NCBI GenBank assembly: GCA_047495785.1
Contig: JBLDXI010000004.1
Span: forward strand, 1,364,001-1,428,000
Source: Lepidodermella squamata
Taxonomy: Eukaryota; Animalia; Gastrotricha
DNA length: 64,000 nt
Direction of reading: 5' to 3'
This document shows, in pieces, positions 7,509 through 64,000 of the stretch. The first letter of the stretch is position 1; every line of letters starts with the position of its first letter. The notes under the pieces were generated by a model, which was given only the letters and a program-made list of their open reading frames with translations, made no database searches and was not told the origin of the DNA. Made by a program: the position numbers and the translations under genes.

Positions 7509-8460
7509 TTACCAGCTTTTACCAGCCATGGCAGAAATAAGAGACGTTTCAACGACGAAAGGCTCTTGGATGCGAACGCAGTGTTGTTTCGCGGTTTGCG
7601 GGATCGGCTTCACCTCCTCGAGCAACTTTGACAGCATCGGCTCGTTACGGCTAACTTCGTCGTTGCTGCAGTGGAGAACAGTTACTTTCGTTGCCAGTTT
7701 TTCAGCAAGCAAGGCAAATGCAGCGGCATCGCGTACGACGAGATTTTCATTACCCATCATTTCTTTGCGAACTGCTGATTTTACACAGCCTCCAACGCCG
7801 TCCGCGGCACTCTTCCCATGGTAAGAGGCGAAAAAATGCCACTGAAGGCTTTCCAAGAAGAGCTCTCGCACAAGTATACTCAAGCTCCCCAGGAAAAACC
7901 GCTGCTTGAAGTGGGTCTTCGCTCCTTCACTGAAACCGTCGAACTTGCGTCGAGCCGGATAGCGGAGCTTCAAGTGCGACAACACTTTGAGTAGGAAGCA
8001 ATAGGCAGCATTCGAATCGTGAAGCATTCGATCGCTCGCCACAACGTAAGACGCGATTTCAGACCCAACCCAGGCGACGAACGTAAACAAAGTAACCTGT
8101 TGGTGGTTCCAGTGAGCTGACTGGACCTCAGACTAAAAAAATGAATTGGGCAAAGGTACTGACTACTGACATATATAGTTTAACATTTAATACCTGTTGC
8201 TGAAGTGCGAAATTTTCGGCGAAGTCTATCTGAAAACGCATGCAGATTCATTAGAATCAGCGATCAATTGGTTAAATGTGGCCTGCTGGTGGGCCTTGAC
8301 CCAGCAATGAGTCGTAAACGGCGTACATTGCCCGTTTATTTTTTCAAACAGGCACTCCAAGGTCAAAGTTTTTCCAACTTTCTCAGTAGCCTATAAAACC
8401 GAAAGATCAATTGATCATCACTAAGTCAATGTTATAACTAACCTTTGTTGAATACGGTAT
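7509..8460 (-). mobile_element. Degenerate intron-containing DNA transposase fragment, probably Sola-type (DDD), copy 1 (frameshifted)
   Basis: Motifs DFAENF, QSAHW..QVTL, SD..HD, FSEG..HFK (degenerate SDG), WHFFASYHGKSAADGVGG; 1-nt deletion near 8233 relative to copy 2. Superfamily assignment is from memory of motifs. Confidence 0.65.
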
Positions 8461-12237: not shown

Positions 12238-12429
12238 TTAGAGGGAGGCTGACGGCAGGCGATCGGCTTCAGAGACCGACAGATCGGTCGCGAACAACCT
12301 GCTATTGCCCAAAAATCCGTAACTTTCGATGCTATTAAACACTAATTGCCATTCATCCCGATTTCCGCTGGTTTTAGTTCCGCAATTTTGCGAATTCCAG
12401 TGCGCCGCATTAACAAGGTCGACGTACGA
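12238..12429 (-). pseudogene. Possible orphan C-terminal fragment of a LamG/pentraxin-like exon
   Basis: Open frame ..SYGFLGNSRLFATDLSVSEADRLPSASL* resembles the G-x-h-xx-hhF-xxx-LS-xx-E end of LamG domains; joined directly to transposase copy 2. Confidence 0.3.
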
Positions 12430-13231
12430 TCGTTGCTGCAGTGGAGAACAGTTACTTTCGTTGCCAGTTTTTCAGCAAGCAAGGCAAATGCAGCGGCATC
12501 GCGTACGACGAGATTTTCATTACCCATCATTTCTTTGCGAACTGCTGATTTTACACAGCCTCCAACGCCGTCCGCGGCACTCTTCCCATGGTAAGAGGCG
12601 AAAAAATGCCACTGAAGGCTTTCCAAGAAGAGCTCTCGCACAAGTATACTCAAGCTCCCCAGGAAAAACCGCTGCTTGAAGTGGGTCTTCGCTCCTTCAC
12701 TGAAACCGTCGAACTTGCGTCGAGCCGGATAGCGGAGCTTCAAGTGCGACAACACTTTGAGTAGGAAGCAATAGGCAGCATTCGAATCGTGAAGCATTCG
12801 ATCGCTCGCCACAACGTAAGACGCGATTTCAGACCCAACCCAGGCGACGAACGTAAACAAAGTAACCTGTTGGTGGTTCCAGTGAGCTGACTGGACCTCA
12901 GACTAAAAAAATGAATTGGGCAAAGGTACTGACTACTGACATATATAGTTTAACATTTAATACCTGTTGCTGAAGTGCGAAATTTTCGGCGAAGTCTATC
13001 TGAAAAACGCATGCAGATTCATTAGAATCAGCGATCAATTGGTTAAATGTGGCCTGCTGGTGGGCCTTGACCCAGCAATGAGTCGTAAACGGCGTACATT
13101 GCCCGTTTATTTTTTCAAACAGGCACTCCAAGGTCAAAGTTTTTCCAACTTTCTCAGTAGCCTATAAAACCGAAAGATCAATTGATCATCACTAAGTCAA
13201 TGTTATAACTAACCTTTGTTGAATACGGTAT
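12430..13231 (-). mobile_element. Sola-like transposase fragment, copy 2
   Basis: ORFs 12898-13137 and 12342-12860 separated by a short GT-AG intron; same motifs as copy 1, frame intact at DFAENF. Confidence 0.65.
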
Positions 13232-20826: not shown

Positions 20827-23800
20827 TCACGAAAACGTCTCGCATAAGACGCGGTCAGCCAAACTATTGCAAGCAACTGTCATGTAGTAAAGATTCGCGC
20901 CGTTACGAATAACAACACACCCATCGGATGTAATAGGCGTAACCCACTGCGAATCGATGTAGTTGAAATTGGAGCCATCGTCCCATTTGAATACTTGGTT
21001 ATTTTGATGGGTGAGGGGAATCCACGCTTTCGAATATCCAATTGCACCGAAAATCAATGCTACCACGGCATCGCTCCGTTCAGAGTCTGATCTGATCCTG
21101 GCGAAGCTAGCATTTCGGGCGGCGCATTTCGACGGGGCTTCGGCAACACCAAAATTAACAGCTCCGACGACTACCAAAAAATTCTTCTTCACATTCTTAC
21201 ACGTGTTCTCATCGTTATAAGTGACATTAGCCGGTTCTCGAACTTGAGAGACCGCATTGCAGCCAACCGTTTCCGCCACACATTGAACTGCCCCGTTGCT
21301 CGTGTCGACGCAGCGGAAAATTTTCGGCTATAAAAATCAATTATACGGTTAACATATAAAAGTTGGGTCCAGTAAAATTTCTGACGTTGTGAGATTTTGA
21401 TGCAACTTTCAAGATAAATTAACGTGGAGTCGAAGAAAAGCAAAAAAAAGAAATTTCGGAACATTTGAATTCGAGTGTGGGATTGCGACAAAATTAAAGA
21501 ATAAAATTAAAAACATTAAAAACAAGTGGCATGTGAAATTTAAATTTCGAAATGTTGAGAGCCAACTCACCAGAGGTGTTATATCTCTGATACAGCTGTT
21601 ATGGTTCAGTCGGAAGTTCTGCAAGCCTGAGAACAATTTAACCTGCAAGGAAAAGCAGTTTTTACCGGCAAATTGTGTTGAACCAACTTTACCTGTGAAA
21701 GGTCTCGTGGGCAAGCGGCGTAGCAAGATAGCCGTTTGGTTGAATCCTCGCATGAAACGGCATTCTGTTGAAATTGAGACATTTTCTTGTTAGATTGCTA
21801 ATACCAAAACTCACGCCAAGCAAGCACGTCTCGCGATTGATGAACACTCCGGTCGAGTACTGCTGGGTTTCATTGCTAGCGAAGCAGCCAGGGATTTGCG
21901 GTCGACAGTCGTTGAACTTTTTGGTCGTAGAATCAAAGCACCGAATGTGCGGCTTTTCACTGATCGGAGCTGAGACTGAAATGACAAACGCAAAATTAAT
22001 TGTCGGCCCAGGTTTCTAGAAAGTCAAATCATTCACTGGGGAAATTATTCTAAATTCTATTTCTAGTTTTCAAATAACGAGACTTTCGAACCTGTTCCAT
22101 TGGTGCATAACGCGAGGGTTGGATACAGAGTTGATCCCGTGGCCTAGACCACAGAAAGGAGAATCAGCGTCACACAGTAACACATCAACCGTTTCAAATT
22201 GCTCACCCAGTTGTTGGGGCAGGAGTACGGGTCTGGGACACAGGTCATGATGACGTTGTTTGAGGTGCATCGCTTGAATTTCAAAGTCTGAAATGGCAAT
22301 GCAGTTGAACTTCAATGGTGCCATCAGTTTCTTGAAATCTCACCGCGAATTCAGCTTTCTTTTTCTCGCATTCGTTGAGGTTGTACTTTAAACTTAAAGT
22401 TGGCTTCTGATCGTCGAACCAGAACGTCTAAAATTTTAAGCGGATTTTTTGATGGTATAGCGATATCATAGTAGATAATACTTCAAAAAAAAATAAGGCC
22501 AAGGATCCGTACACCGACGCGTTTCGGCTTTTATTGCCATCTTCAGGGTCTAACAAAGAAATTTACAACATCAATTAAGCTAATTTCAGATGTGAACAAT
22601 CAGTACGGCCTCTCACCTCATTTTTGTTGCCAGTTGGTGAAGATTATATAAACTGCGGAAATTAGTTCAGCTTTACATCTTAAATGTTACTAGAAACACA
22701 ACAAGTTAAGTTAGGATATTATAGTCAAGTAATATAAAATTATAAACTATTTTTGCGATTATTTACGTATGCACATTTTGTTGATAGTGGGATCCAAAGC
22801 CTGTATGTACAGCTTTTCAGTACGTAAAAGACTGAAAGGTTTTTGGCACTGGTGGAGGATAGAGGCGTGGAATGGAGGATCTTTTTTCACACATGTTACG
22901 AAGTGCTCACCAGGCGTGCCAGGTTTTATCGAGTTGACTGAGTAAATATGCTGAGTGGTACGTGTAGCAGCAGGTTTGCTAGTGCAACCAACATATTTTT
23001 CACCACAAGTTCTACATTCCAATTGATAAATTACATTTTGTTTCGTACAGTTAGAACGAAGGTCTTTTGATAGGCCACACAAGCAACCCCAACATTTATA
23101 AGAAGTATGTACATAATCTGTGAAGCGGGTGGGTATCATGACTTTCAAGGCGGTAGATTTCCAGCAAATCTGGATATCTCTTTGATAAAAGGCCTGAAAT
23201 TTAAATTGGCTGAAATTAGCTTAATTGATGTTGTAAATTTCTTTGTTAGACCCTGAAGATGGCAATAAAAGCCGAAACGCGTCGGTGTACGGATCCTTGG
23301 CCTTATTTTTTGAAGTAACGTCTAAAATATCGATTTTATAAAATAAAAACAAGATTTCGATGACCAATTTCAATCATTTTTTAGAATTTTTTAAATAATT
23401 GAATGAGGCTCACATTCATATCACCGGGGTTGTTACAGCCGATATTTCCAGGCACGCAGAACGGGGTCAGAGCGGCGTATTTGTAGCACATTCGGGCATT
23501 CTGTAGACAAAACAGAACAAATTTGAATTTTTATAGCAGAAGAAATAACGGACCCCAGTGTTGCAGACGCCGGTTGTTCGGAAAATGGAGCCCAACTTCA
23601 ATAGACAAATAGACAAACACGTCAATTCTCGGAAGAAATTAAAATGGGGAATTGAGGAATTAACCTGATATTCGGTGAGTGGATCACAGGCATTGGCAGC
23701 TAGTTTGCAGCTGGTGAATTGGTTGCTGAACTGCGAGAAGCACCGAACCCAGTTCACTTCTGTACCCGAAACGTCGTCGCCTGACGCCAACAAAAGGGTT

Positions 23801-31000: not shown

Positions 31001-34000
31001 AGCATATACGTAATAAGGATGTTAACCTGTTTGTAAGGGCCTCTGTCGAACGAAAAGTAACGAAAATCTTTCTGTCAACCCCTTCTGTTAACTCCTTTCT
31101 GTCTAGTCAATTTAAAAAACAACCTTCTTCCGCTAAACTGCACATTTGGCCCTTGTTTTCTGGCAGACTGCTCTTCGAATAAGAGCCTCCCAAATTCCGG
31201 AATTGATCCCACTTAATTCTCGACTGAGCCCTATCTCGTAATTCGGAATTTTTCACGAAAAACGTCTTTTCGGAGTGGCATCCGGAGATAAGTATTTCAA
31301 TTTGACAATTTATTAATTATTTGGAACCCAACTTAGGAAACAATTCTACGCACTCGGAAAGATACATTTTTCGAATTTCGAATGTATATGCTTCTATCAA
31401 TATAAAAAAATTCCGACACCTAGAAATTATCCACTTTCTTTTATTTAAAGGTATATAGAACTAGAGGAATAAAATAATTCCAAACACGAAATAGCGTTGT
31501 TTCTCCATACAATTCAAGGGATATGGTGAAATCATTATCAAGTTATTGAATTCAGCACCTGACATCTGACATTATTTAATTTTGTACCAAATTATTCCAA
31601 ACATCCCGGATTTGAACCTTCAACGCTAACATAATCCTAACCCTAACTAGTAAAAACGAATGAAATGGTTAGGTACACCTTTTCCACTTGCATTTTACCA
31701 CCGTACAATTGCATTTTTCCGATCTATTTATAGCCTGTTTTTGTTCACGTGAATAACAGCTATGATTTATTGTCGTCTTCTCCGTCGTCGTATTCCACTT
31801 CTATGGCAATGATAGTAATGAATGAATTTTATTGCTCTTAGCACTGATCACTGGCAAATTATCTGGCACGCGCCGAATTTTCTATATAACTATTCCATTC
31901 AGGGCGATTTTCTACTTTCATCTGTGCAACAATGAGTTACCTATTCTACAGTTAAATTGTATGCAGCAGGAGACGATACATTAATGCGCACTTACGGCAT
32001 TTCCCTTAAAATTTCTTGAAATGCCTATTTCTACTAAATCCGCAGAAATGGGACTCTTAAAAATACAAGGAATAAGCGCTGACTTCATTGGTGTGTTTAA
32101 TATTCTGGAATGTATAGCAAAGATTATTCCAAAATCAGGAGAGCCTATCATTAGAAATTATGCTACATTAAAAATATAACACAATGCACGAGAAACTGAA
32201 TTCTCATTCTTATTCCGCCGTGAACAATCCCAGAATAAGATGAAAAATTTGAAAAATAATGTCGACTGATTAACTCAGCCCGCCGTATTTTTACTTCAAG
32301 GCTTACACTCACCGCTGAATTTGGATATTTTGGGACACTTTTAATAGGATATTGGAATCAACTCAAGGTATTCAGAACCGCTTCGAAGTTTTGATTTTGC
32401 CGCTTCAAAATCAATTGAAATTTTCTAGACAACTTTTCTTCAAAAATATTGCAATTTTTGGGAGGTATATGTAGAAAATATTTTTATCAACATTTTCTCG
32501 GGCTTACAGCAGTCTGACCCCAATAAGTTAACTTAAAGGCTCTAAATAATGCAGCGAAATATCCTTGTCAGCGATGACTATTTGCAAAAAATTCGGCGCG
32601 TGCCTGATAATTTGCCAGTGATCAGTGCCAAGAGCAATAAAATTCATTCATTACTATCATTGCCATAGAAGTGGAATACGACGACGAAAAAGACGCCAAT
32701 AAATCATAGCTGTTATTCACGTGAACTGAAACAAGCTATAAGTAGATCGGAAAAATGCAATTGGACGGTGGTAAAGTGCAAGTGGAAAAGGTGTATTTTA
32801 TTAAAGGGTGAGGTAAAATCTGTCGCCCAAAAAGGTAAAGTTCGCCCCATTTGTGTCGCCCAAAATTAAACAAAGCCGCACTCATTGCGTAATCGCAGCA
32901 CGCGTCCACTTAAAGACGCACAGAATAGCGAGACTACGCACGTGGTTGATAATGAGTCGCCCCATAATAAATAGAGCCGCCCAATTTGATATTAGGGTTA
33001 TTGTAGTCATTAAAAATGATTTTAGAAGACGAAGAAGACGAGAATGCTCTTATTTCGGGCGAAGATGTGTTTGTAGCTGATAGCAGTGATGATGATAGCT
33101 CACCCATCACTGATGAGTCGACCAGTACTGGCAGCGAGTCGAGCAATAAATCGCCCTACAGCATGCAGCCGGCAAAATGGCACCCTGTTTTTTCGTCATC
33201 GGATGTAGACGAAGTTGAGGAGAAATGGCAGCAGCTAGCAACCGATGCTGGCAGCAGCGGCTGGACAGCGGCAAGAGGCATAAAAACCGCGAAGAAAAAC
33301 AACGAAGTATCTCAAACTTATTACTGCGCCGACTATTGTAGGAAGAAGCGCTGTCGAGCCGAAACGAAGATCGTTTACGGTGAAAGAATGCGGCTTATGA
33401 CAAACGGCATTGAACACCGGCACCCTGATGAGCCACTGCGAGGCCTGTCGTATCGCGTTCGCGCGGCCATTGACGCCTGCTACGACGAAGGAGTGAGTAA
33501 AACAACCCGAATTTTACGACTTCAATGATTTTTTTCATGATTTATGCAGTTTAAAACATTCACCGCTATCATTGCGCGCTTGGAAGAGAAAAATCGCAAC
33601 AAGCCTGACGAGGAGAAGATCGATATCAACAAAATCGACGATCATAAGATTCAGTACTACATCAAAAAGCTGAACAACGGCGGCAAAGCTGCGGTTCAAT
33701 TATTTACGTTGGCCGATTTCGACGATTTCGCTGCTGCTCATTGCGCGGTGCCGACCAACGAGCATCAGGCCTACGTCAATCACTGCGAGACTCACCTGCC
33801 GACTGCCAACGAGCCACAGGCGTTCAGGCTTCAAATGACCACGCCGGGCCTTCTTGGACTGCATTCGCATGCCGGCCCACTGCATCTGGACGGCACGTAC
33901 AAGACGAACTATATGGGTCTACCTGTTATCAACATGGGTACCACGGACAAGGCGCGTAAGTGGCACCCGACTTCATTCACGGTGGTGAGCGGCGAGAAGG

Positions 34001-37000
34001 AGCGCGATTACGAGGTCGCACTTAACGCTCACAAGGAGGCTTACAGGTAAGATAATCCTTCTTAAGTGTTTGCCTACCTGTTTACTCGCCGGTTTATAGG
34101 GTAGTGTATAAACAGCCGATGCCGACACCCCCGGTGATTGTACGCGACGGCGCCCTGGCTATCGTCAACGCCTGCAATAAAGTGTTCCCGGGCGTGAAGC
34201 AAGTCCAATGCTATGCACACGTTATGATGAACGTGGATGACAATCTACCGCTCATTAAGGTGATTGATGCCGGAACTGGAAAAATAGACCAAAAAGCCAC
34301 GAAAAAGAAGCGCGAAGAAGTGCGAGCGGCTGTTGTTTTATTACAGCAGTGCATCTCTGACATCGAATTCAATGAAGCGTCGGGTCATTTTTGCGACTTC
34401 TACTTATCCGACGAGGTAACCCGGCCGTTCATCGAATACTTCAAGCGGGTGTGGCTTGACGACTCGAATCGCAACACGTGGTACGAGGGGTTCGCCCCAG
34501 GCCTTCCATCGACCAACAACGCCAACGAATCGGGCAACAGGGACATAAAGCGGACTTGGACGGCTAGGCAGCAGCTGAAACTATTGAAATTACTCGAAAA
34601 GTTCATAGGTCAGGTGTTCCCGTTTTGGTCTTATCGCCGTGATGTGACGAATATCAACACAGCATGCCACTTCCAGGTTCTAGTAACCGTGGCTCTCCAT
34701 CACTGGCGAGGCGCTCTGGAATTTAAAGCCAAATCGGTCAAAATTCGGACCATTAATATCGATGGGGCTAGCTATCGCGTTTGGCGGCGTGATGGCGAAA
34801 AAATCGAAGATTACGAGAAAACCAGCTTTATCGTCCCATCCATTCAAAGCCGATTCGACAACTGGGCCGAATTCGTGAAGTATAAGCTGACCTATCATGT
34901 CGCAGTGTTGAGCAACGGGGTTTGGACTTGCCAGTGTCGCTACTACAGCAAAGAATTTGTTTGCTATCACTCGCTGGCCTTCGAAATCCTCTCTGGCCGC
35001 CCGGTACCGCCTGGTTATGCAAAACGGCTTACTAAGGTGGAAAAACCGGCGAAGCGTGGTCGCAAAAAGTTGGCGAAAGGGGCCCTGGCTATGCAACCTC
35101 TCGCCTATCTGGCCGGCGATCCGGATCTTGAACAAACTATCGTCAGCCCTCCTCCGGCTCAAGACGCAGAAACAACACCGGTTCGGTTAGCCCCAAAAGT
35201 CAGGCGCGTTGAAAAAGACTCGGAAGATGAAAATACTGATAAAATTGATGATGATGATGATGATGATCTTGAAAAAAAAGTTTCTTGTCAGTGCAAAAAG
35301 GGTTGTTACAAGCGAAAAGGCAAGCCATGCGCTTGTTTCTCGAGCAATTCAAAGTGTTCTGCTAAGTGTAAATGTGTTGAGTGCACCAATAAATAAAATT
35401 TGGCGGCGTTTTACCCACGCAGGGCGACTTTGTTTACTTTAGGGCGCGCCTCTCCAAAACGAGGGCGCGCTATTATCAAATGAGGGCTGAGATTAAACGA
35501 GGGCGGACTTTTACCTTTTGGGGCGGCAGATTTTATTTTACCGTTTTATTAAATGATGTTTGGTACCGGCGTAAGATTTTTCCATAATTCAAACGTTCAA
35601 ATAACTCTAGACCCGAAAAATCACCGTAATTTCGGTGATAAAAATCGGGCTTTTAGCTTATAAAATCCCCTCAATTAGGGCCCTGTCAGTATCCTTATTC
35701 ACGGATTTTCAACATTTATCTGAATTAATGCCCTAAATCACCTTAATTTATCTACAAAAACTGCAGGTATATATCCGCTGTAAGCATGAATTCAGATACC
35801 GAAACTGAATTCATGCATTCGGTAGATAAATTAGAGTGATATTTTTCTCTGGTTTTCAAATGTCATTCTTAAAAAGAGGCATTCATATAGCTTTAATAAA
35901 AATGGTCGCTGAAGTTGAAACTCACGATTGATCTGCAAGCGGCGTAATTTTGCGAAAACGTTCCATTTGCGAAATCACGTGTCTAAAAAACTCAATTTGC
36001 TAATTTATATCGAGAAAGTGAGGGAGCTGATCAGACCGGAGGCTGTCCTTGCGGGCAACTCGCCGAATCCTGGCATGTTGCTGCATCAGCGCAGAGATGG
36101 ACACTCTGAAACAGAGAAACAGTGTGAAAATGGCGGATCATTTTGAGCAAAATCCTCACCGCAGTACTGCAAGCACTTTCAGACGTGTAACTGACATTTC
36201 CAACCTGTGATGGAACATTTTGAAGTTGATCAGAGTTACGCCTCGCATCAACTCACGGCAATGGATGGGCTCGAGCAAGACGGGAAGCAGCCAATGTAGG
36301 ATTTACCGCCAGCGTTGTAACAGTGTACGTAATTAACAACTGATTATTATGAAATGTTCATCGGTTGAGATTATCCACCAAAGCTCTTAAAAACCAACTT
36401 TTGCAAATTGCAAACGAGTCATAGCTGGCTCCATCTTGGCTTGCGGTCTGGAAAAGCAAAGTATTAACAAAATCGGAATTCCGCAAAGATAAACTCACAG
36501 TCGATGCTGGGCAATTCGAGCTGATCGGGACGCATACAGTGAGCGAATTTGAAGGCGGATCGACGCAACGTTTATATTTGCCCTTTAATTATTACCAATT
36601 ATAATTAGCAAAGGCGATGAACTTTTTTACCACCTGAATCGCAGCAATGCAGGTCTGGAAATTAGTAGCAAAAAGCGTGGTGCTAGATCCGACGCTTCCA
36701 CCCTGTAAAATTTGCGATTGAACTCAACAGTAAGAAATGAAAAACTGGTGTAAGGTTTCACGTCATATTTCCCAGCGCCGCTCGGGCACGAATCCAGGCA
36801 GCTACCTCCGCTCGAAGCATCATAACACATGTTGATAGACTAAATATTAAATAGTTTGGTAAATGGTGGTATAATCGATGGGAAATCGCTGAACCCCTGT
36901 ATCGCAACTAGTTTTCGACGCGAAGATCGTTTGGCTAGGTGTCTGTTTTACGAAAATCTATCAAAGCGTGGAATCATTGAAAATAGATCTCACATCTGTC

Positions 37001-47591: not shown

Positions 47592-50500
47592 TCATAATCG
47601 AAACGGAGGCGTGCAATACATCGTCAGCGCTTGGGCGACCACCAAATTCGGGAAGCGATAGCCCCGATAGATATCGCAAATAGGACTAAGCGCTGCACCG
47701 GCCGAGTCATCGCCGACTCGGGAGAGGACTTCGTAACTCACCGCACTGATTAAATCAACAGTAATATACGAAACCGTAGGACTTATTTTCGATACGTAAA
47801 TCGACTGGCCAATGTCGATTAGAAACCAAAAATCAGTGCTGTACCCCCCGGCGCTGCCTGATGGGTAAAATGAGCCATCAGTCATGTTGGCGTTGAGTGA
47901 AGCCGGAAAGGTCGATGTGACTTTCTTGAACAGAGCGTAATTCGTCCCAGTTTCAGAGCTAGCTTCAACTTTACAAATCAAAATGATGGCCTCGCGAGAA
48001 ATAGATATCACGTTGACGTAACGGCCCGATACGGGTGGGAAACACGGCACGGGCACTCTAGCATCATAAGGAACGTCAGGGTCGCCAGCATTGCAGTTCG
48101 TCAATGCTGCATCAGCGTACCAGGTCGGGACGCTGTTGGAAACAGCGACTCTCATGTCTGTAATGGCGTATTCAACATCGGCGTAGGTGCAGCCCTTGAA
48201 GCTAAACCGTCCTATCGGCTGTAGTGTGTAATCGTCAACGTACAGTCGGACGGCGAATGCAACTAGAGCTGGTTTAAGGTAGTTGACGAAAGGCTCAGAA
48301 TTCGGGCCACTGGAAGGTCCATCGAAAATTCTAATTCTCGATCCATTGTTTCCGGTATAAGCTACCCATTTGCTACTGTCGCCCTTTAGCCGAAATGCCA
48401 AGTGATACTTTTCAATCCAGGCCGCCAGAGTAGCGCTGGATTGAACCGCGACAATGTTGATGATTTTCAGCTCGTTGAATGTTATCTGAAAATACGGCTG
48501 ACGCTCTGTGGCCAGCGGGATCCAGTCTGAGTTGCCGATGTCATTCCTGCTCAAATCGCTAGGAGTTGTTGCACTCGAAGCAGTTTCTACGGATTCGCTA
48601 TCGTAAAGCTCAATGTTGCAAAATTGATCTAAAGAGTTTCGAAACATTATCATGGCATCATTATAAGTAATTTTATAATCTTACGTGCGCAGCCTCGAAC
48701 TCGCCATTTCAAGCAGATTTGGCCGCTCCACGATTCAGGATGGAATCTGAGATGACGGGCTATGATGTGAGGCCTTAGGAAGCTCCACTGAGTCGATGTT
48801 GAATCGTTGTTTGCAACGAAAATCTATAAAACATTTATTTCATTTTTCGAGCAAGAAATATGTCGGGCTACTTTTGTTGACGATAGGCCGATGGCTCGAT
48901 TGTAAAATGTTTTGAAGGTTACGTTATTAGTGCTGTAGGACAATCGATAGGTTCGGACGAAGCAGTTGTTCACCGAATCGCCAGATGTCGCAATCGATGT
49001 AACGATTTTCTGCTCGCCAAAGTCCAAAGTAAGAAATTCCGTGTTAGACAAGGTCGCTGGAGTCCAAGCACAAGCCATAGAGCCCCGAATATCATCCGAT
49101 CCAGGGCAAACGCCGTAGGGCGGGGAAGCAGAGGAGTAGTTTGAACTGTAAGTCCAGGCCGATGTCGATGACAGGTCGGACTCGCAAACGTGACCCTCCA
49201 CTGGAAGTGCAATAGTTTTGATATCCTCACTACAACTATTATACTTTCTATCGCTTACATGTATTCGGCGTGGGAATTTGGTTAGCAAGCTCCATGGCTA
49301 GGAGTGAATCTGCTGGGCTTTGGTAGATTGCTAGCCAAGTCATCAATCCTGTAAAGTACGCGCTGCTCGAGACATCCTAAATATGATGAATTATGTTTTG
49401 ATGCTGAAATGCCCCTTACAAAAAATTTGATTTTATATATGCTCAAAAATACTAGAAGCGGCTCTCTATCTTATGATACTGCTTTTTATTCTAGCAAAAA
49501 AGAGCCCGAAAAATCTTAGAATCAAATACAAATTGAATATATCCCAATTAATTGTTCATTTAATCCCAATTAATTGAATATAACTTTTGAAAATTTACAT
49601 CGTACACAATCACTGTCAGAAGATATTATTAGCTCCCTATCAGTTAGTATTGTCTGTGGCCTTTCGCCAGCCCTCATTCCCAGGTTGAACATGCCAGGTT
49701 GAACTCAGGTTTCCCTATAACTTGAGCCTATTTCTAGCTTGAATTTTCGGAAAATAATATGATGTTAAAAATGTAGACCTACCCTTCCTATGACGAGGCT
49801 ATTCGTGTCACCAGGAATGCAGTCGCTGAAGCTTTGCGTTGTCCCGGCCACGCCATCACGGTAGCCAGTGATTCGATGACCGCCTGCTGTGAAATCGACG
49901 TTCAAAATCAGATGCTGCCAGCGATTAACAGCCGCGTTGCCTGTATCGTTCGCAGTCTGCACTCCACCGCAATTCACCGTGTAGGATATCGACATGTCCG
50001 TCGAGTTGTAGAGCAGCTGGAGAACGGTCGATGTACCCATGGCCAGCTGGAATATTGGCTGGCTGCCAGCTGTGAAATTTTGAAACAGCATTGCGTGGAT
50101 TGCTACGGTATAGGATGGCAGAGGGGCAGATCGGTTGAAGCCGACCTTGTAGCTACTGAGGTATGAAGCCACGTTCAGTGAATTAGCGGCGGTCGGTGAA
50201 AATCGAAACACCTCCGTGTCACCCGTCGACCAAGGGAACGCAGCTCCACGAAGGGACGACCCAGCCGCAGTCAGCACATCACTTGTACCATCCAATGTTG
50301 ACAGGCCGTTGTTGTAGTCGAAGGGTGTTAACAGGACGGCTTTCATTGTGCTGGTTAGCGGGCATCGCCTCGAGGAATGGGCGAATCTTCGCGTGAACAC
50401 AACTGCGTTATACACTTGCACACACGCATAGCTCGTCGGCTGGCTGTTGGCGCCTCCGATTCTGAAAAACGTCGCATCAGTTTGTATTCCAACACCAGCA

Positions 50501-53500
50501 CAGCGATTTGACCACGAAGCAACGAATTCGCCCTCTTGGATCAGATAGGCGGTAGCCGTCCCTAATCTGTATTGAAATCCAACATAGTTCCACTGATTCA
50601 GCAACAGTTTTATCGGCGAAGTTAGCGTGAATGGCGATGTTGCACCTTTGCAAAGAGCGACAAGTTGAAGGTAGCCGGTCGAGGATGCCCTCAATCCCAC
50701 TGCAAAGGCTGTAGAATTCAACGCATCCGTCCAGCCCATCAACAATCCGCCAAAACTAGCCGGTTTGAAATGAAACAGGAGAGTGACTGACCGTAGATAG
50801 ACGGTGAAGCGGCTATTATCAGAGTTTACCCAGAGATAATCCATTTGAGAATTGAGCTTCAGCGCGCTAAATTAATAGAAAAAAAACAACTGCTATTTTG
50901 TCGACGCAAGTTTAGAATTACGTGTTACTGTAGCTGAGCACATTGTCGCACGTCGGGTTTCCAACCGCTCTGAAAGCACTGCTCGGTGTGATAAGATCAG
51001 CTAGGTTGCAGGCTAACGGATACAGCACAGCAGGCGTCGGGGCTGCAAATTTTGATTAAATTTGAGCCAAAGTGCCTTTGAGTAAGAACTCACGAGTCCA
51101 AGGAGCTTGGGCACTTTGATCAATCTCAGCGTTGTCCAAAGCCCGTTTGTATATCTGGATGTGCGATAGCCTCCCGGTCCATGCACCTCCCACCACGAGG
51201 TAAGCATTTACTTTGACTGCAGTCGATGTAAAGCAGCTGACCGCATAGATCCCACGCATGATGCGATCGATGAAAGCACGAGCAATACCCGCGCGGCAGT
51301 CGAATGTCACAGCGGTGTGAACCCAGCGATTTTTATCGATGATAACATAACCCTGGGTTTTAGGGAAACTCACCGAGTCGTTGCATGCCCGAGATTGATC
51401 CACTAGAAATGTCCCGGTATCGTTAATCCAAATTCGCATACACATACTAGGGAAAAGATAAATATCTTGTCAATAGACAAGCGTGGGATACTGTGAATTC
51501 ATCACCAACTCATTGAATTTAGTACCGAAAATCATTGAATTTTGTACCAAGTTTTTCCAATCAGTTTAATCGAAGTCACAAATTTAAAGACTCAGAGTCT
51601 AACCCGAACCCGAACCCTAACCCTAACTCTAACCTTAACAAGCTAAATAACGGAATAAACTCTTTAGGTATTGAATTAAATGAAATTTTGTGCCGCATAA
51701 AGATTTTCTCCAAAAGAGCCCATACTGTGGCTTACTTTCCTTGAGTTGAGCTGACCAAATTGAGAATGCCGCTCGTGTGCCAAACCCATGCTGAAAATGT
51801 CCAGCCATTGTTTTTGTCAGCAGCCAAATTATCCATCGGTAGAAACATTTTGCCGGAGCCTGACCACGCAAGGGCTGACAGAGCTCGCCCAGTAACGCCC
51901 AAGCCGAATGTCAGCCCGGTTGAGTAGACGCCGTTGTTGCCATTGCCGCTCAGATCGTCAGCTCGGCGCAAGATATCAAGAGGCCAGTAGCCATCTGGGA
52001 CGAGTGTGAAGGCCGGGTCGAGTTGCGGGGTAGTAATTTCTACAGATGTGATAGTTTTCGTCTCACCCAAATCAATTGTAACGTAAGACCGCTGGAAAGG
52101 ATCGCCACCACCTGATCGCAGCTTCGTGCAGTTTGTGAAACTTCTCTCCCGGATTACACGGTCGCCAGTCAAAACTGAGGCACCAGGCAGCCCAAGCAAG
52201 GCATCAGTCGCTAGATCATACGCTTTGGCTATAGGAGCTTTGAAGGCAATATTCGGTGTATACCTTGGGATAGTTCTACAGCCTAGCAGCTCGATTTTGT
52301 AACAAGGCTTCGTGCCAGAGAATGAAATCTGCTCAATCCTGAAGTATTGAGCAACAATCGGCCTCGGGAAGACAACCGTTGCGATGTTCAACGCGTCGAC
52401 ATTACCCGTTAAAGCAACTTGGCCATTATTGTCGTGCAGCTCAGCCCAGTTATCACTCGACCCAGCCTTGTAGCTCAAGGTGAACACTTGGACCCAAGAA
52501 TTAAGCATGGCACAGCCCTGAATTTGAACAGCAGTGACCACGGTCTGTTTCCTCAGATCGATTGTCAATGGCATGCTGTTAGCATACGCAGCCAAGCCCC
52601 AATTCAGCCGTGAGTAATACGGCTTTGCTACTGCAACAATTTCGGTCGAAAGTTGCGAGTCTTCAATTTCATTCGTTTCCATGCCCAGCGGCTCGAAGCA
52701 CTGAGCTGGAGAGCCCTTGACTGCCACTTTCGCTTTGCTTACAACACCCGTTCTATTCTCGAATGTGTTTGTAAATCTGACATGCTTTGTAAGAACTGGT
52801 CGGAAAGGCGTGAAAATCGTAGTTTTGCCGCTGATAGGATTCCAGAATCTGTTCTCACCGTGGCCATTATCAATCGATTGAAAGGCCAAACCATCAAAAC
52901 TCCACTCTAATTTCACCTTTAGTAAACAGTCGAACCTGCAGTAAAACTGGAATTCCGTCATCCAAACGAAGCGCTGGAGATCGATTTTAAACCAAGTACC
53001 AACGGGAGGATTGTTGGCGAACCCGAAATAATGCGGATGATTTTCGTAGAGATGGCCAAGCGGCGGCTTCTCGTCGCTAAAAGCAGAGCTCGAAGAGTAA
53101 CCCAAATCGGTTACGTAAGAATTATCAATGTCAACAATTTCACCGCCTGAAACTTGCAGCAACAAGCTAGGAGCTGTCCACGCTGACTTTAGTATTGCAT
53201 CCCATGTTGCTGTTAAAGCGCAAGATCTCGTCGATGAGCACTGGCGCGATTTCTTCATCAGACCCTGCGATGCCACTGAGAATGATGTTGCGTCTTCATT
53301 TGCTACGACCTGGGCAATTGCCGAGCCAGGCAAATCAAAGCTCCATAGGTCGCAGGTTTGGTTAGTCGCCGTGAATTGACCAGACCTGCAGAGATCGTTC
53401 GAATTACACGAAGCCATACAGGTTACGGCTGATTGAACAGAGCTTAGATTTCCAACAAGGTGGATCGAGAGGTTGTAGCCGGCCTTAACTGGGCCGAAGG

Positions 53501-53579
53501 CCATTCCGGGGTAGATGTTGTAGTGATAACCACCAGCAGCAACGCTGTGGCATAGCGCTGCCGTTAGAAGGAAAATCAT
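47592..53579 (-). CDS. Large secreted multi-lectin: PAN/Apple, 2x F5/8C, 3x LamG-like, 2x F5/8C, fucolectin-like tail (~8 exons, ~1,700 aa)
   Basis: Signal MIFLLTAALCHSVAA; PAN C.xxC..C.S..F....CDL; discoidin motifs CFEPLGME..IEDSQL, TIDLRKQTVVTAVQIQG, KIELLGC, LTLDFGEQKIVTSIATSG; LamG YWPLD..DLSGNGNNG..WTFSAW..WVHTAVTF..IYKRAL; C.P..GRYV.V....L..VE and NYALFK.V (F-type lectin-like); no TM segment seen. Confidence 0.82.
51485..51711. mobile_element. Third copy of the telomere-repeat MITE, in intron 1 of the multi-lectin gene
   Basis: gggata.tgtgaattcatcaccaa ... (aacccg/aaccct)n ... taggtattgaatta.atgaaattt..taagatttt. Confidence 0.7.
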
Positions 53580-56039: not shown

Positions 56040-58397
56040 TCAACACGTTAATTTTGCCCTAGCTCCTCGTGAAATCAGCAAATCTGCCACATATGTCCTT
56101 TTCAGACATATAGCGTAATCTAGAGCATTATAGCCTTTCGCATTTATAATATTCACATTTGCACCTCTATCCAGCAGCAGCCGAGCAACATCGGCCCAGC
56201 CCCGCATAGCCGCGTTTATCAACGCCGTGTCGCCTTCATTACTTATGGCATCGATGGCTGCTTTGCGATCGAGCAACAGTCGAACCACTTCCATTTTTCC
56301 TTTCCAAGCAGCAAAAATAAGCGCCGTGTTGTTAACATTATCTGTTTCGTCGATGGAAGCGTTGCGATCCAGTAACAGCCGCACCGTTTCGACATGTCCA
56401 TACTTAGCCGCATATATCAAAGCTGTCGAGCCATTGTTATCTTTAGCCTCGATAGAGGCGTGGCGATCCAAAAGCAGTCTAACGGTATCGATATGCCCAT
56501 TGGCAGCCGTCTCCATCAACGCCGTCGTGCCATTTTTGGACTTGACGTCAATGGATGCGTTGCGATCGAGCAACAGTCGTACAGCCTCAACCTTGCCTTC
56601 TATAGCCGCTAGAATCAACGCCCTGTGCCCATTATGATCCGTGGCCTCTATGTCAGCTTTGCGATCCAGCAACAGCCTAATCATTTCAACGTTTCCTTTA
56701 AGTGCGGCGTGCATCAGCGCAGTGTCGCCAATGTCAGTCTTGGCTTCTATAGCAGCTTTGCGATCTAATAAGAGTCGCACGGCTTCGACTTCCCCCAAAA
56801 TAGCCGCTAGAATCAAAGCTGTGGCACCGTAGTTACTCCTGGCCTCTAAAGCAGCGTTCCTATCCAATAACAGCCGAACTACTTCGACATCCCCACGTGC
56901 AGCGGCACTCATCAACGCCGTCCAGTCTTCGTTATCCTTGGCGTCAATGGAAGCGTTGCGATCGAGTAGCAGTCGTACAGCCTCGATCGAGTTAATAAAA
57001 GCCGCACGCCTCAGCGCTGTTTGGCCATCGTTGTCCTTTGCGTCAATGGAAGCGTTGCGATCGAGCAACAGTCGTACAGCTTCGACCTGGTTGAAAACAG
57101 CCGCCCAAATCAATGCTGTCGTGCCATTTTTATCTTTGGCCTCCACGTCAGCTTTGCGATCCAGCAACAGTCGTACAGCCTCGACCTGGTTTAAAACAGC
57201 CGCCCAAATCAATGCTGTCGTGCCATTTTTATCTTTGGCCTCCACGTCAGCTTTGCGATCCAGCAACAGCCTAATCATTTCAACGTTTCCCTGCTGCGCG
57301 GCGTATATCAGTGCAGTCTTGCCATTGTTACTCTTGGCTTCCATAGCAGCTTTGCGATCCGATAATAGTCGCACGGCTTCTATTTTCCCTAACCAAGCCG
57401 CTTTAATCAACGCTGTGAAACCTTCGTTATTCCTGGCCTCGATAGAAGCGTTGCGATCCAATAACAGTCGGACTGCTTCGATTCGCCCACTTGAAGCTAC
57501 GTGCATCAATGCCGTCTCGCCTACATCGTCTTTGGCCTCGATGGCGGCCTTGCGATCTAGCAACAATCGAATTAAATCGACTGGCGCCAATAAGGCCCCA
57601 ATCATCAAAGCCGTCATGCCCTGGTTGTCCTTGGCCTCTAAATCAGCGTTTCGATCCAGCAACATTCGTACTGCTTCGATTTTTCCCCTGGAAGTCGCAA
57701 AAACCAAAGGCGTCCAGCCAGTAAAATTATCCTTAGCCTCAATCTGAGCGTTGCGATCCAATAGCAGTCGTACAGTTCCAACTTCCCCCGCCAGTGCTGC
57801 AGAAGTCAATGCCGTCACGCCCAATTCAAACGTGGCCTCGATGGCAGCGTGGCGATCCAGTAACAGCCGAACAACTTCGACATGCCCATTGCCAGCCGCA
57901 ATCATCAACGCCGTTAAGCCACCGGTACCCGTTGCGTCGATCGAAGCATTCCGATCTAAAAACAAGCGAGCCACTTCGACTCGTCCATGCCTAGCCGCAA
58001 ACATTAACGGCGTCCTGCCTTCGTCACTCTTTGCCTCGATCGAAGCGTTACGGTCCAGCAACAATTGAACTGATTCTAAATCTCCACAACTAGCAGCATG
58101 CATTAACGACGTCCTGCCGTTGAAACCTTCCAGGGCATTCACATCAGCACCGCGGTCGAGAAACAACCGAGCAATTTCCACTCGCTGCCCCGGTTTCTGA
58201 TTGATACACACCCAAATACTATGAAGCAGGGTGCCATTCTTAGTATTCCAATTATCGCAGGTATATAAATTGGGATTGCGCCAGTTCGGATCGAACTTGC
58301 CGCCAGTGGAGTCGTCGATCTCCGCCACAAGTTGCCGCACCTGCTCTACATCGCCTGTCCCAGTTACACTCCATAGCACCCCATACACTTCACGGAT
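56040..58397 (-). CDS. Intronless exon encoding ~21-23 ankyrin repeats; predicted last exon of the protease gene
   Basis: 33-aa periodic GxTALxxAAxxGxxExVRLLLDRxAxIxAxD; no ATG near its start; preceded by acceptor ctttctttag. Confidence 0.92.
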   Translation of the reverse strand: MREVYGVLWSVTGTGDVEQVRQLVAEIDDSTGGKFDPNWRNPNLYTCDNWNTKNGTLLHSIWVCINQKPGQRVEIARLFLDRGADVNALEGFNGRTSLMHAASCGDLESVQLLLDRNASIEAKSDEGRTPLMFAARHGRVEVARLFLDRNASIDATGTGGLTALMIAAGNGHVEVVRLLLDRHAAIEATFELGVTALTSAALAGEVGTVRLLLDRNAQIEAKDNFTGWTPLVFATSRGKIEAVRMLLDRNADLEAKDNQGMTALMIGALLAPVDLIRLLLDRKAAIEAKDDVGETALMHVASSGRIEAVRLLLDRNASIEARNNEGFTALIKAAWLGKIEAVRLLSDRKAAMEAKSNNGKTALIYAAQQGNVEMIRLLLDRKADVEAKDKNGTTALIWAAVLNQVEAVRLLLDRKADVEAKDKNGTTALIWAAVFNQVEAVRLLLDRNASIDAKDNDGQTALRRAAFINSIEAVRLLLDRNASIDAKDNEDWTALMSAAARGDVEVVRLLLDRNAALEARSNYGATALILAAILGEVEAVRLLLDRKAAIEAKTDIGDTALMHAALKGNVEMIRLLLDRKADIEATDHNGHRALILAAIEGKVEAVRLLLDRNASIDVKSKNGTTALMETAANGHIDTVRLLLDRHASIEAKDNNGSTALIYAAKYGHVETVRLLLDRNASIDETDNVNNTALIFAAWKGKMEVVRLLLDRKAAIDAISNEGDTALINAAMRGWADVARLLLDRGANVNIINAKGYNALDYAICLKRTYVADLLISRGARAKLTC

Positions 58398-61300
58398 CTA
58401 AAGAAAGATTGCTGGGAGATTCCTCGAACTGCTGCATTGCCTTGTGAAACTCACAGGTCTTTGCTTTGCTGACACGCAAGAACCAGGCAGGGACCATGTG
58501 AAGTTCGATAGGCACGTTATGGAAGCATTTCCACGAATCACAAAATCTTGGTTGCATGATATGCTTCGAATAGCCCCGACGCTCGAAAGGCCTGGAGCTA
58601 CGGCGCCGTTTTTCAACGTCTGAACAGCACCGCAGCCTTTAGGGCAAGCAATACAGATGGCGAGTGAAATCATGTATTCACTTACCTGTACGGTTACACC
58701 TTCCATTTATCCCTGGACGGAATGGAGGAAAGCAAGAGGCAGTTGAGACAGATGCGGAGTACGTGAAACCAGGGTTGCATTTGACGCTCACCACCCCTCC
58801 TCGTTCCAGTATCGTTCCAGGTCTTAGAACTACATCAGTATCTTCCGAAGTTTCCGGGTCCACTCGGGTGACAATTCCCGATGTTATGTTTGGTATGACA
58901 CAAGACTGCTCGGGAGGGCTCGTCTGGCTGCGACCATCTATGTTCTCTGAAATCCAATCGAGAACCTTGCAGACTCTGCTGTAGATGCCAGGCGTGCGTC
59001 CATCGCATGACTCATCGCCGTTTGAAATAATGCCTAGAAGGTAAATTTTCCTCGACATCAAGCACATGAGAGGGCCCCCAGAATCTCCAACACAAACGTT
59101 GCTGCCGTCAGAGGCTAAACACATTTTCGAATCGATCATGGTGACTGGATTCGAGCGGCCTCGGGAATACTCCATTGAACAATTCCGGTACGATCGAACT
59201 TGAAGATTCAGCTTCCTCGGGATCTCAGATATTCTGGCTGAAAAACATAAATGCTCTATAACGATGTGCAACATAGCTAGCCTGTAAACACCATATAGAA
59301 AAACAATATTTATCTGCTGCTTAGCTAACTTTCTAAAATTTCAAAAATTCTCTCTTGGATGAAAATCAGCTGATGAATTTATTTCTAATTAAAGCGCTAA
59401 TCTCCATTTTTTCATAAAAATTTATTCTTGTTGTTGGCTTCATTGTTGGCTGCTGAACAATTTCGATAAACGTGATTCCAATTCCAAATCAAATCAAATT
59501 TCAAACTAGGCTAAATACCTCCATCCAAGATTGAGGATTTATCCACAAATTTTCAATTCGAAGCATTTTCATCGCAATTCAAACCATTGATTCCGCAAAA
59601 AAGCGAAAACTAAAGCTCGCTTCGCTCGCGGTGTTGTAATTATTTGTTTTGTAGCAGTCCCGCCCCAAAACTATCATCGAATTCGTCTACTTCGCTCGAT
59701 TCGCTGTATCTTCTAGCTTTCACTGTCACAAGCGATGCCGTGTTGCGACTTCTGGACCCCAATGCTGCCCGAGCTCTCTCGGATTTCATGGAAAGCTGGC
59801 CGATTGTTTCTTGATTTCCGCGACATGCTGGACGAATTCTGCCCAAATTTCCCCAATTTCTGGACGAATTCTGCCCGATTTTCCCGAGCTCGTGGCTAAG
59901 TACTGTTCGATTGGGGTGAATGCTGCCCGATTCGATATCTGGCGTGTGCAATTTCTCCCAAAATTATGCCACATTTTTCTTGATTCTTAATAAAATCGTT
60001 TGGAGTGTTGCTTGAACTTTTTTGGGGTTTCTCTTGTGTGTTTGACAAGTGGGGTTTTTAGTGATATTTTCTGGACAAGCAGGGATTTTCTGATATGAGA
60101 ATATCAAAAAATATTCTCCATCTATCAAAAAATGCCTGTTTGGAAAATATCTAAAAATCCCTGCTTGGAAGAAGGTATTATCAGTTTATATTTCGGCCAT
60201 TAAGAAATACCCCTTTTATGGCCTATTTTTATGGCCTGAACCGGCATAACTTTATAATGAAAGATTTATGGCGATCCGAGTTGTCAATTTTTTAATGTAA
60301 TTTTTTAAAATATGAAAAAAGTCGGCAGGTTTTACTAGCATTTTTGGTAGTCAGATGAAATAAGACATTGGTCGGATTAAACAAGTTGTCCTCCAAGTAG
60401 CTTATGATATGAGAATATCAAAAAATGTTCTCCATCTATCAAAAAATGCCCGTTTGGAAAATATCTAAAAATCCCTGCTTGGAAGAAGGTATTATCAGTT
60501 TATATTTCGGCCATTAGGAAGGCAAATTTTACGATACGATCCGGATTTTACTAATTATAGCCCTTTTCGGTGGATTTTAAAATACTATTCGTATTTTGAA
60601 ATTAAATAAAATTATATTGGTGGGCGGATAGCAAGTGGTCGCGTGCCGCAATTAGGCTCGAAAATATTTACTGTGAAAAGATTGTTAGTTTCCTATTTGT
60701 TACAGTGTTTTCTAAGGCTATTAGTTATTACCTATTTCCTGTATACGAGAATAACGTACTGCGAGAAAAATGGCCCCAGCCAACTGCTACCGCCGAATCA
60801 CATCCGTCAATTGAATCCGCTGTGAACGAGTTGGACCTGCACATTGCAGTCGCGTCAGGTAAACAAATCGGTCGTATCTGCTGTGTGAATCTAGGAATCG
60901 GGCTCGTCAACCGTAAGAGAGCGAAATCAAAGTCGTAGAAATTCCGACTTCCGTTGTATAGCGGATGAACTAAAGGCGGCAGAGACACAAGAGACTCGCG
61001 AGAGGCTGTTTCCGACCGAATGCTGATATTATGCCGACCTAGAGACACTTTGATCCTTTTCAAACAAAGAATAGCAAATAATGTAGAAGAGGAATGTGAT
61101 TAAAAAACCTACAAAACGGGCGCATTTCTGGTTTTCCAAACGCAATGAGCAGCTGTAATGAGCCATTCCCTCGAAATGAGAGAAGCTCCGCAATATGAGG
61201 CTGATGTTTCGCGGCTGAAATAAATCTCCAATGAGACCTTAGAAGAACAAGATTTTTCAGGTTAATTGTATGGGAAAATAATTGCACTCAGGCAAACCAG

Positions 61301-61450
61301 CCACGGGTATTCATTTGGTTCTGTCGGGTGACTGCCTGGGTCGCTTGATTTCGCAATTGCCGTAGAGATTACAGTACCGCATCCGAGATCTTGAGCGATT
61401 GCAACGCCGGAAATCAGCACAAGGAAGGTGATAGCTTCATGAAGGCGCAT
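56040..61450 (-). CDS. Secreted S1 serine protease, 2x Sushi/CCP, ankyrin-array fusion (6 exons, ~1,200 aa); the protease-Sushi part alone spans 58398-61450
   Basis: Signal MRLHEAITFLVLISGVAIA; TAAHC, DFALL, GDSGGP; Sushi CVIP..CNPGF..C..G.C and C..NG..CNQDF.I.G...TC....WS....C; 57-nt gtgagt..ctttag intron (58398-58454) joins QRP to IREVYG in phase 0. Confidence 0.72.
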
Positions 61451-63077: not shown

Positions 63078-63765
63078 ATGCGTATTCTCAAAGCTATCAC
63101 CTGTCTTAAGATAATTTCCTGCGTTGCAATTGCTCAAGAATGCGGTACTGTAATCTCCACTTCAACGGCGAAAGTAAAAGGCCCGGGCAGTCATCCAGTA
63201 GAAGCACATGAATACCCATGGCTGGTTTGTATAATTGAATGTGTTATTTTCTTATACCGGAAAATATGTTTTTTGAAGGTCTTTCTTGAAATTTATACCA
63301 GCCGCGAAACATCGGCCGCATATTGCGGAGCTTCTCTTATTTCCAGGGAATGGCTCATTACAGCTGCTCATTGCGTTTGGAATGATGGAGAGACTCCAAT
63401 TTTGTAAGGTTTTTTGTTTTATATTCTCATATCAGATGTTGGGAAACTTTTTTATTTACAGAATTAAAGCAATGATTGGGCGCCATAACATCAGTGTTGA
63501 AACAGAAACAGCCTCTCGCGAGTCCCTCGTGCTTCTGCCGCCTGTGATACATCCGCAATACAGTGGAAGTCGGAATTTCTACGACTTTGATTTCGCTCTC
63601 TTACGACTGTCGAGCCCGATTCCTAGATTCACACAGCAGATACGACCGATTTGTTTACCTGACGCGACTGCAATGTGCCGGTCCAACTCAATCACAGCAA
63701 ATTCGATCGATGGGTGCAATTCGGCGGTCGCAGTTGGCTGGGGTCATTTTGCACATAGTAGGTAA
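63078..63765 (+). CDS. Second serine protease paralog, head-to-head; first three exons only, continues beyond the window
   Basis: MRILKAITCLKIISCVAIAQECG..EYPWL|VFLEI..YCGASLISREWLITAAHCV..|..YDFDFALLRL..IRPICLP..AVGWG; same intron positions as the first copy. Confidence 0.85.
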
Positions 63766-64000
63766 TTTTTTGTACACTAGTGACGAGAGCAGAGCTTTGG
63801 ATTTGATTTGATTTGATATGCAGCTTAAATCACGGATCTTCCTCAATCAATCAAAATCAATCATTGTCCCACCTTCCAGAACTAAATCAATCAAATCAAA
63901 TCAACGACACCCATAAATCACAATAAATCGCAAACATTAGGATTTTCAAGAAGTTGGGGGCGTTGAAAATGCAAGCAATTGATAAAATAGTGTGAATTTG

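Follow-up and report, generated by a model that had tools for sequence, protein, structure and literature searches.

A predicted six-exon gastrotrich gene joining a secretory signal, a chymotrypsin-fold protease and CCP modules to a DARPin-like ankyrin array

The region described here lies on the minus strand of a 64,000-nucleotide (nt) stretch of the genome of the gastrotrich Lepidodermella squamata (NCBI GenBank assembly GCA_047495785.1, contig JBLDXI010000004.1, positions 1,364,001 to 1,428,000 of the forward strand). This whole stretch is referred to as the window and all coordinates count from its first letter, those on the minus strand being given in the direction of reading. On balance, we read positions 61450-56040 as a single six-exon gene encoding a protein of the secretory pathway, in which a serine protease is followed by two complement control protein (CCP, or Sushi) modules and then by a long array of ankyrin repeats. 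From the way in which splice sites recur among related genes, it appears highly probable that the protease, the two CCP modules and the ankyrin array belong to one spliced coding unit. The product is also likely to be routed through the secretory pathway, so that its ankyrin part faces the lumen or the outside of the cell. Comparison with the rest of the assembly further indicates that the gene is one member of a large, fast-turning-over and lineage-restricted family.

The gene model comprises six exons and five introns, all of the GT..AG type, which together give one frame of 3666 nt, or 1221 amino acids (aa), with a single terminal stop. From 5′ to 3′ the introns measure 60, 57, 1522, 49 and 57 nt. 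The predicted product carries, in order, a signal peptide, an S1 protease, a divergent CCP module (CCP1), a canonical CCP module (CCP2) and about 23 ankyrin repeats; a Pfam scan placed Trypsin in exons 2-4, Sushi in exon 5 and some 20 Ank units in exon 6. Specifically, exon 1 (61450-61298) contains the start codon, the putative signal peptide (MRLHEAITFLVLISGVAIA·QD, with the boundary marked by a dot here and below) and a short pro-segment with the cysteine that would tether it to the protease (GCG), and it ends in ...EYPWL. Exon 2 (61237-61113; Pfam Trypsin E=6e-7) codes for the N-terminal part of the protease with the catalytic His (LITAAHC), exon 3 (61055-60760; E=5.9e-7) for its middle part with the catalytic Asp (YDFDFALLRL), and the first part of exon 4 (59237-58912; E=8.6e-15) for its C-terminal half with the catalytic Ser (GDSGGP) and an Asn at residue 189 of the S1 pocket. 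The second part of exon 4 (58911-58686) codes for CCP1, which has four Cys and no conserved Trp, and exon 5 (58636-58455; Pfam Sushi E=3.1e-7) for CCP2, ending in ...SCVSAKQRP. Exon 6 (58397-56040) opens with 95 codons of an ankyrin N-terminal cap (58397-58113) that include no ATG but hold two invariant Cys and the invariant Asn of an N-x-S/T sequon. In the remainder (58112-56040), some 21 ankyrin repeats of a uniform 33 residues are followed by a C-terminal cap that has two Cys, and the exon closes with a TGA stop at 56042-56040.

The initial annotation had described the ankyrin open reading frame (ORF) as lacking a start ATG, and had joined it in phase to the second Sushi domain through a 57-nt intron of typical size; each of these points was borne out. 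The frame runs uninterrupted for 785 codons between 58397 and the TGA (the 782 aa originally counted began at an internal GTG), its first ATG is codon 99, and an in-frame TAG precedes it at 58400-58398. Intron 5 (58454-58398; GTGAGT...CTTTCTTTAG), whose last three bases are this TAG, joins ...AKQRP to IREVY... in phase 0 and is close in length to the three other short introns of the gene. In the predicted spliced product, ...AAGACCT is joined to ATCCGTGAAG, giving a junction peptide of the QRPIREVYGVLW type. The genomic sequence across this intron is confirmed by an 861-nt contig from a DNA-like sequencing run, probably made from the source sample, which covers 57842-58702 in unspliced form with zero mismatches. 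The contigs of a second run come from a relative and gave only scraps at 90-95% likeness.

Evidence on whether the CCP2-ankyrin join is real came from paralogues, namely 20 loci of the 121-Mb assembly and 20 additional ankyrin caps from a genome-wide list, 40 copies altogether. In the 20 loci the gene parts lie on one strand in the order protease, CCP, (CCP), CCP, ankyrin cap, array wherever the pieces are present. Across approximately 20 paralogues the splice sites are conserved, the CCP2 exon ending in (K/R)RP·GT(A/G)AGT and the ankyrin exon starting at TTTAG·(I/V)REVY, at the same codon boundary and in phase 0. The intervening introns are anywhere from 50 to 5357 nt long and represent all three mod-3 length classes, so that read-through is ruled out as the cause of the common frame. 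In all 40 copies the ankyrin exon directly follows an AG acceptor, and in none of them does it start with an ATG; a pyrimidine tract is present at the 20 further caps, an in-frame stop lies directly upstream of the exon in 18 of the 20 copies checked, and the first Met stands at about codon 99 in most. No copy in which CCP2 runs into the ankyrin exon without an intron was found among the 40, the shortest intron being 50 nt. As judged from these alignments, donor and acceptor positions are conserved far more than chance would allow.

The coding constraint on the start of the ankyrin exon points in the same direction. Over its first 70, ATG-less codons, the median ratio of nonsynonymous to synonymous substitution rates (dN/dS) was 0.35 at a dS of 0.75 in 119 paralogue pairs, and this N-terminus appears to be under purifying selection. 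Because the exon would be translated and constrained and yet has no start codon, it must be spliced to something upstream, the phase-0 donor at the end of the CCP exon being its only candidate partner within 57 nt in this copy.

The gene is not a single odd case. At least 106 ankyrin-cap exons are present in the genome, nearly all of them in open frames; at least 30 ankyrin-cap genes are protease-linked, and at least 30 relatives of the protease exons were located in the assembly. Array length among the copies runs from about 200 to 952 aa. A head-to-head paralogue starting at 63078 (+), about 1.6 kb from the start of this gene, shows the same six-exon structure and codes for 825 aa; whether it too ends in an ankyrin exon had been left for checking, and it does. 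Its exons 1-3 lie within the window (63078-64000), its intron 5 is 1183 nt long, and its 391-aa ankyrin exon lies past the window end, the paralogue continuing to the equivalent of about 68560 (positions in the numbering of this locus, L004, become window coordinates on adding 62499). The divergent gene pair is duplicated on another contig (C64, loci L008 and L005), which suggests that pairs have been copied as units. Several paralogues are broken or truncated: the middle copy of locus L006 (L006:5900-6800), L014 and L021 show a stop or frameshift in the C-terminal half of the protease, a truncation, or an ankyrin frame of only 78 aa, and from such copies we deduce birth-and-death turnover in the family.

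Regarding the route taken by the product, inspection and a hydropathy scan agreed with the earlier call of a signal peptide and no transmembrane segment. The N-terminal hydrophobic stretch covers residues 6-24 (Kyte-Doolittle (KD) score 1.83; AITFLVLISGVAIA·QD), ending in AIA·QD, and more than 20 paralogues have kept a signal-like N-terminus. The scan detected no membrane span beyond the N-terminus and no hydrophobic C-terminal tail of the glycosylphosphatidylinositol (GPI) type, the C-terminus (...ARAKLTC) being hydrophilic. Two ankyrin helix pairs reach KD scores of 1.92 and 1.83, equal to or above that of the N-terminus; since Asp, Arg or Pro occur in them, we read them as probable amphipathic repeat helices rather than membrane spans. 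N-glycosylation sequons number 1.37 per 100 aa in the family versus 0.34 in the 120 best-matching generic ankyrin proteins (p=5e-12), and this copy carries 14 against the 4.4 expected from shuffles, an excess that is inflated by repeat duplication, NAS being part of the repeat consensus. With its cap Cys, its invariant sequon and this sequon density, the ankyrin part seems to be fitted for passage through the secretory pathway.

The array itself is readily recognised, exon 6 matching Pfam Ank_2 (PF12796) at E=3e-149 and Ank (PF00023) at E=2.6e-138, and it can be divided into 21 units at 33-34-residue spacing plus the caps. In 30 copies, two Cys and one sequon Asn of the N-terminal cap are invariant, and the C-terminal cap has two further Cys in most copies. 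An AF2 model of the N-terminal cap, made with an alignment, reached a pLDDT of 93.9 and showed an ankyrin N-cap fold with a helix starting at residue 2. For the modelled N-terminal 165 aa, the best matches among solved structures were designed ankyrin repeat proteins (DARPins), with a TM-score of 0.75, a root-mean-square deviation of 2.5 Å and approximately 30% identity. Over 121 repeats from 15 copies, entropy exceeded 3 bits at repeat positions 1, 3, 8, 11 and 12 and was below 1 bit in the framework. By our own mapping, the hypervariable positions presumably fall on the hairpin tip and the first helix and are largely those that are randomised in DARPins. The initial description of the repeats as DARPin-like thus holds for the fixed framework, the variable face and the best structural matches alike.

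Between close paralogues, pooled dN/dS was 1.04 at the hypervariable positions versus 0.30 in the framework, with dN at the former five times that of the latter, a comparison limited by the uncertain repeat-level orthology between arrays of unequal length. A ratio of about 1 would fit relaxed constraint as well as diversifying selection. Tandem Repeats Finder returned a 99-nt period at 56900-57269 (3.7 copies, 83% match), a stretch in which two adjacent units are near-identical (NGTTALIWAAV(L/F)NQVEAVRLLLDR...). In view of these near-identical neighbours and the 99-nt tandem repeat, the array seems to have grown by recent unit duplication.

The protease exons 2, 3 and 4 scored 29.9, 30.0 and 55.6 bits to Pfam Trypsin (PF00089; cut-off 20.6), and the catalytic triad His57/Asp102/Ser195 is complete, with the motifs TAAHC, DFDFALLRL and GDSGGP all present. 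The protease part contains 12 Cys; as we read the alignment, they match the canonical disulfide pairing of S1A proteases, including the propeptide tether. The usual zymogen activation site (a basic P1 residue followed by Ile/Val-x-Gly-Gly) is absent, the gene reading AKSS·DPGSHP and most paralogues AKSR·GPGSHP, and the canonical Ile16 was found in no copy of the paralogue alignment. Residue 189 is Asn here and in the closest relative, L008 (..DGSNVCVGDSGGP), versus Asp in most paralogues. This relative shares the KSS·DPGS reading as well. Overall, the domain can be assigned from its sequence to the S1A chymotrypsin fold, yet its specificity and enzymology are probably not those of trypsin. Co-variation of the P1 activation residue with residue 189 across the paralogues was considered and rejected, P1 being R, K, T, S, P or G regardless of residue 189. 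In two paralogues (L006:2529-3210 on C42 and L007:3851-4530 on C36) Asp takes the place of the catalytic His (TAADC) and GDSGGP has become ADSGGP, while open frames and long ankyrin arrays are retained; with His57 replaced in both, they are likely pseudo-proteases within the family.

Of the two Sushi domains originally assigned, the second stands and the first falls short of the Pfam threshold. CCP2 scored 31.1 bits to Pfam Sushi (PF00084; cut-off 20.7), and its C1, C27, C41, W47 and C53 do not vary across 15 paralogues. CCP1 scored 14.2 bits (range 13-18 bits), and a profile-profile comparison with CCP2 returned a probability of 5%. A profile search of the PDB gave only weak matches for CCP1, mostly to factor H, DAF and CD46 chains (E 0.03-0.9). 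Its AF2 model had a pLDDT of 76, and the top Foldseek matches of that model were nearly all CCP modules (TM-score 0.5-0.63, E 0.04 or worse). On the basis of its four Cys and its modelled fold, we accept the first module as CCP-like with moderate confidence.

Taken together, these results allow us to propose how the product might work. The gene is presumed to be transcribed and spliced as modelled, and the whole protein would enter the endoplasmic reticulum, be disulfide-bonded and N-glycosylated, and then be exported. The ankyrin solenoid, with its fixed framework and hypervariable concave face, would be the variable target-binding part, the CCP pair would act as a spacer or adaptor, and the protease, if catalytically active, would be the effector or would set off a downstream step. 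We consider the chances about even that the ankyrin array is a variable binder directing the protease; the 'binder-guided protease or toxin' of the initial annotation is likewise an inference. The most likely role would be extracellular recognition of changing targets, in defence against microbes or parasites or in attack on prey. More tentatively, and with considerable doubt, the protease-CCP-ankyrin genes and their protease-less Sushi-ankyrin relatives may constitute a germline extracellular recognition system, in which each copy would address its own targets via the hypervariable face and the protease would cut the target or start a cascade.

A number of points tell against this interpretation. 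The run search returned no RNA set, and the junction 58455/58397 rests on paralogue comparison. Intron 5 is in frame, and as its TAG is an in-frame stop, an mRNA retaining it would end the protein after CCP2 and yield a protease-CCP-CCP product free of ankyrin repeats. The signal-peptide and membrane-span calls were made by eye and from hydropathy rather than with a dedicated predictor, and the inflated sequon count, the dN/dS near 1 and the uncertain repeat orthology described above belong here as well. With KSS·DPGS at the activation site, no Ile16 and Asn189, activation and specificity are uncertain, and catalysis may be weak or absent. Some of these points would serve an account in which the region holds two units, the protease-CCP-CCP gene ending at the TAG of the supposed intron and the ankyrin ORF forming a separate gene, or being spliced to another leader, with both co-duplicated. 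Besides the missing RNA run and the in-frame intron with its stop, such an account could draw on paralogues in which the CCP2-ankyrin gap is 2-5 kb, and on 10 of the 20 extra loci in which CCP2 is unseen within 3 kb, leaving room for other exons. Here, however, a mere 57 nt lie between the two parts and the ankyrin frame, closed upstream by a stop, offers no Met before codon 99. Its codons 1-70 appear to be under purifying selection and are modelled as an N-terminal cap, every one of the 40 caps begins at an acceptor, and a consensus phase-0 donor closes the CCP2 exon in every instance found. We regard the division into two units as very improbable.

Two further explanations accept a single gene. 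In one of them the array would be a cargo or effector acting inside a target cell after delivery, in the manner of a toxin such as the latrotoxins or of bacterial Ank effectors, or it would be cut at the basic linker and separate from the protease. The linker (K/R)(Q/R)RP-(I/V)RE is indeed conserved and basic, the family is large, fast-evolving and variable in repeat number, as venom and effector families are, and ankyrin repeats normally bind cytosolic partners. The cap Cys and the fourfold sequon excess nevertheless suggest an oxidising, glycosylating compartment, and no translocation or pore-forming domain was detected by Pfam. Cleavage of the furin type at the CCP2-ankyrin linker was considered and found to be unsupported for this copy, AKQRP not being a furin-type site, and Arg-Pro is a poor substrate for trypsin-type enzymes. 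This explanation seems unlikely to us, if less so than the two units. Least probable of all, by a little, is that the family architecture is real and this gene a decaying or neutral, non-functional copy. Several paralogues are broken or truncated, as described above, and in this copy the cap no longer has its near-universal NVT sequon (SVT here), the basic residue before the protease is gone, residue 189 is Asn, and a repeat-laden 1.5-kb intron splits the protease. This copy has on the other hand kept 1221 codons open, five GT..AG introns and an intact triad, and relative to its closest paralogue its framework dN/dS is 0.27 (dN 0.117, dS 0.434) and its cap dN/dS 0.30. The reading that we prefer is still that of one intact gene for a secretory-pathway protease-CCP-CCP-ankyrin protein.

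Intron 3 (59238-60759; 1522 nt, GTACGT..TTTTCAG) is the only long intron of the gene, and the long intron of the paralogues occupies the same position too. It is swollen with repeat DNA and includes a 119-nt direct repeat (60088-60206 and 60402-60520, 97% identical). Word depth in the contigs of the DNA run rises to about 10,000 at this intron versus about 50-200 in several other gene bins, and such a depth indicates an element of very high copy number. Elsewhere in the window, an ORF region resembling a MULE-type transposase was found at 33016-35396 (+) by a weak Pfam match, the last part of its 430-aa ORF (34104-35396) being rich in Asp/Glu and Cys. Two near-identical ORFs without a Pfam match, at 7509-8090 (-) and 12342-12860 (-), lie 4.8 kb apart and are probably mobile-element copies. 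The window is otherwise a neighbourhood of secreted binding-type genes: C-type lectin domain ORFs lie at 11315-11716 (+), 13310-13792 (-) and 20827-21279 (-), and proteins of the F5/8 type C (discoidin) kind, one of them with a PAN domain, are encoded at 47592-48653 (-) and 51732-53579 (-).

Searches of public proteins, made within length windows and with the exons taken singly, returned no protein of this architecture. The ankyrin cap found no relative among proteins of 430-1370 aa and 66-210 aa, and the 120 best matches to the whole array were generic ankyrin proteins without Trypsin or Sushi. An exhaustive search with exon 4 gave identities of at most 45%, and the ten long matches that were scanned with Pfam were for the most part multi-trypsin proteins, and Sushi and Ank were absent from them. 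In the literature searched, neither a Trypsin+Sushi+Ank protein nor secreted animal ankyrin arrays other than latrotoxin were found. As far as these proteins and papers reach, the architecture is undescribed, in keeping with what the initial annotation had supposed.

Ankyrin repeats are as a rule intracellular modules, and a secreted ankyrin family, if it is confirmed, would overturn this rule of thumb. It would add a new scaffold for diversified extracellular recognition to immunoglobulin domains, leucine-rich repeats (LRRs), lectins and fibrinogen-related proteins, as an ankyrin counterpart of the complement/MASP system or of the LRR-based variable receptors. It would likewise provide a natural precedent for an engineered binder-guided protease, and its members would be natural, glycosylated and disulfide-capped 'DARPins', whose arrays could supply secretion-competent ankyrin binders.

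Protease and CCP domains together typify the complement and clotting cascades, in which the CCP modules usually precede the protease. C1r, C1s, MASP-1/2 and horseshoe-crab factor C likewise combine a secreted chymotrypsin-fold protease and a CCP pair with a separate recognition part, and the protease acts where that part binds. In its proposed working the product comes closest to such modular proteases, yet it does not belong to their group. The arrangement differs, in that complement proteases run from the recognition part through CCP-CCP to a C-terminal protease, whereas here the protease comes first, the CCP modules follow and the ankyrin array is last; the order CUB-EGF-CUB-CCP-CCP-protease is replaced by protease-CCP-CCP-ankyrin. 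Recognition in the complement type is carried out by CUB, EGF or lectin modules or by partner proteins, whereas the candidate here is the ankyrin array, and no CUB, EGF or lectin domain was detected in the product by Pfam.

With DARPins the array shares a near-invariant 33-residue framework, variation at hairpin-tip and first-helix positions, and N- and C-terminal capping repeats. DARPins are man-made, however, with two to three internal repeats and no Cys or glycans, whereas the array described here is natural and has about 23 repeats, a signal peptide, cap Cys and many N-x-S/T sites, and the TPLH motif of DARPins is replaced by TAL(M/I). Latrotoxins, as animal proteins that act outside the producing cell and carry about 20 ankyrin repeats, are a further parallel, though the likeness goes no further than the repeats. 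They have no classical signal peptide, protease or CCP module, and their N-terminal part forms a pore. Their N-terminal (wing/body) region is not matched here, the N-terminal 436 aa of our product being accounted for by the signal peptide, Trypsin and the CCP modules, and the only domains detected by Pfam being Trypsin, Sushi and Ank. Lastly, the variable lymphocyte receptors (VLRs) of lampreys and the expanded NACHT-ankyrin families of fungi and invertebrates are also large and use a solenoid scaffold with a variable concave face and a variable number of repeats; fungal NACHT-ankyrin proteins were among the best sequence matches to the array (38-50% identity over part of it). VLRs are built from LRRs by somatic assembly and NACHT-ankyrin proteins are cytosolic, whereas the arrays of this family are germline-encoded, lie behind a predicted signal peptide and are fused to a protease.

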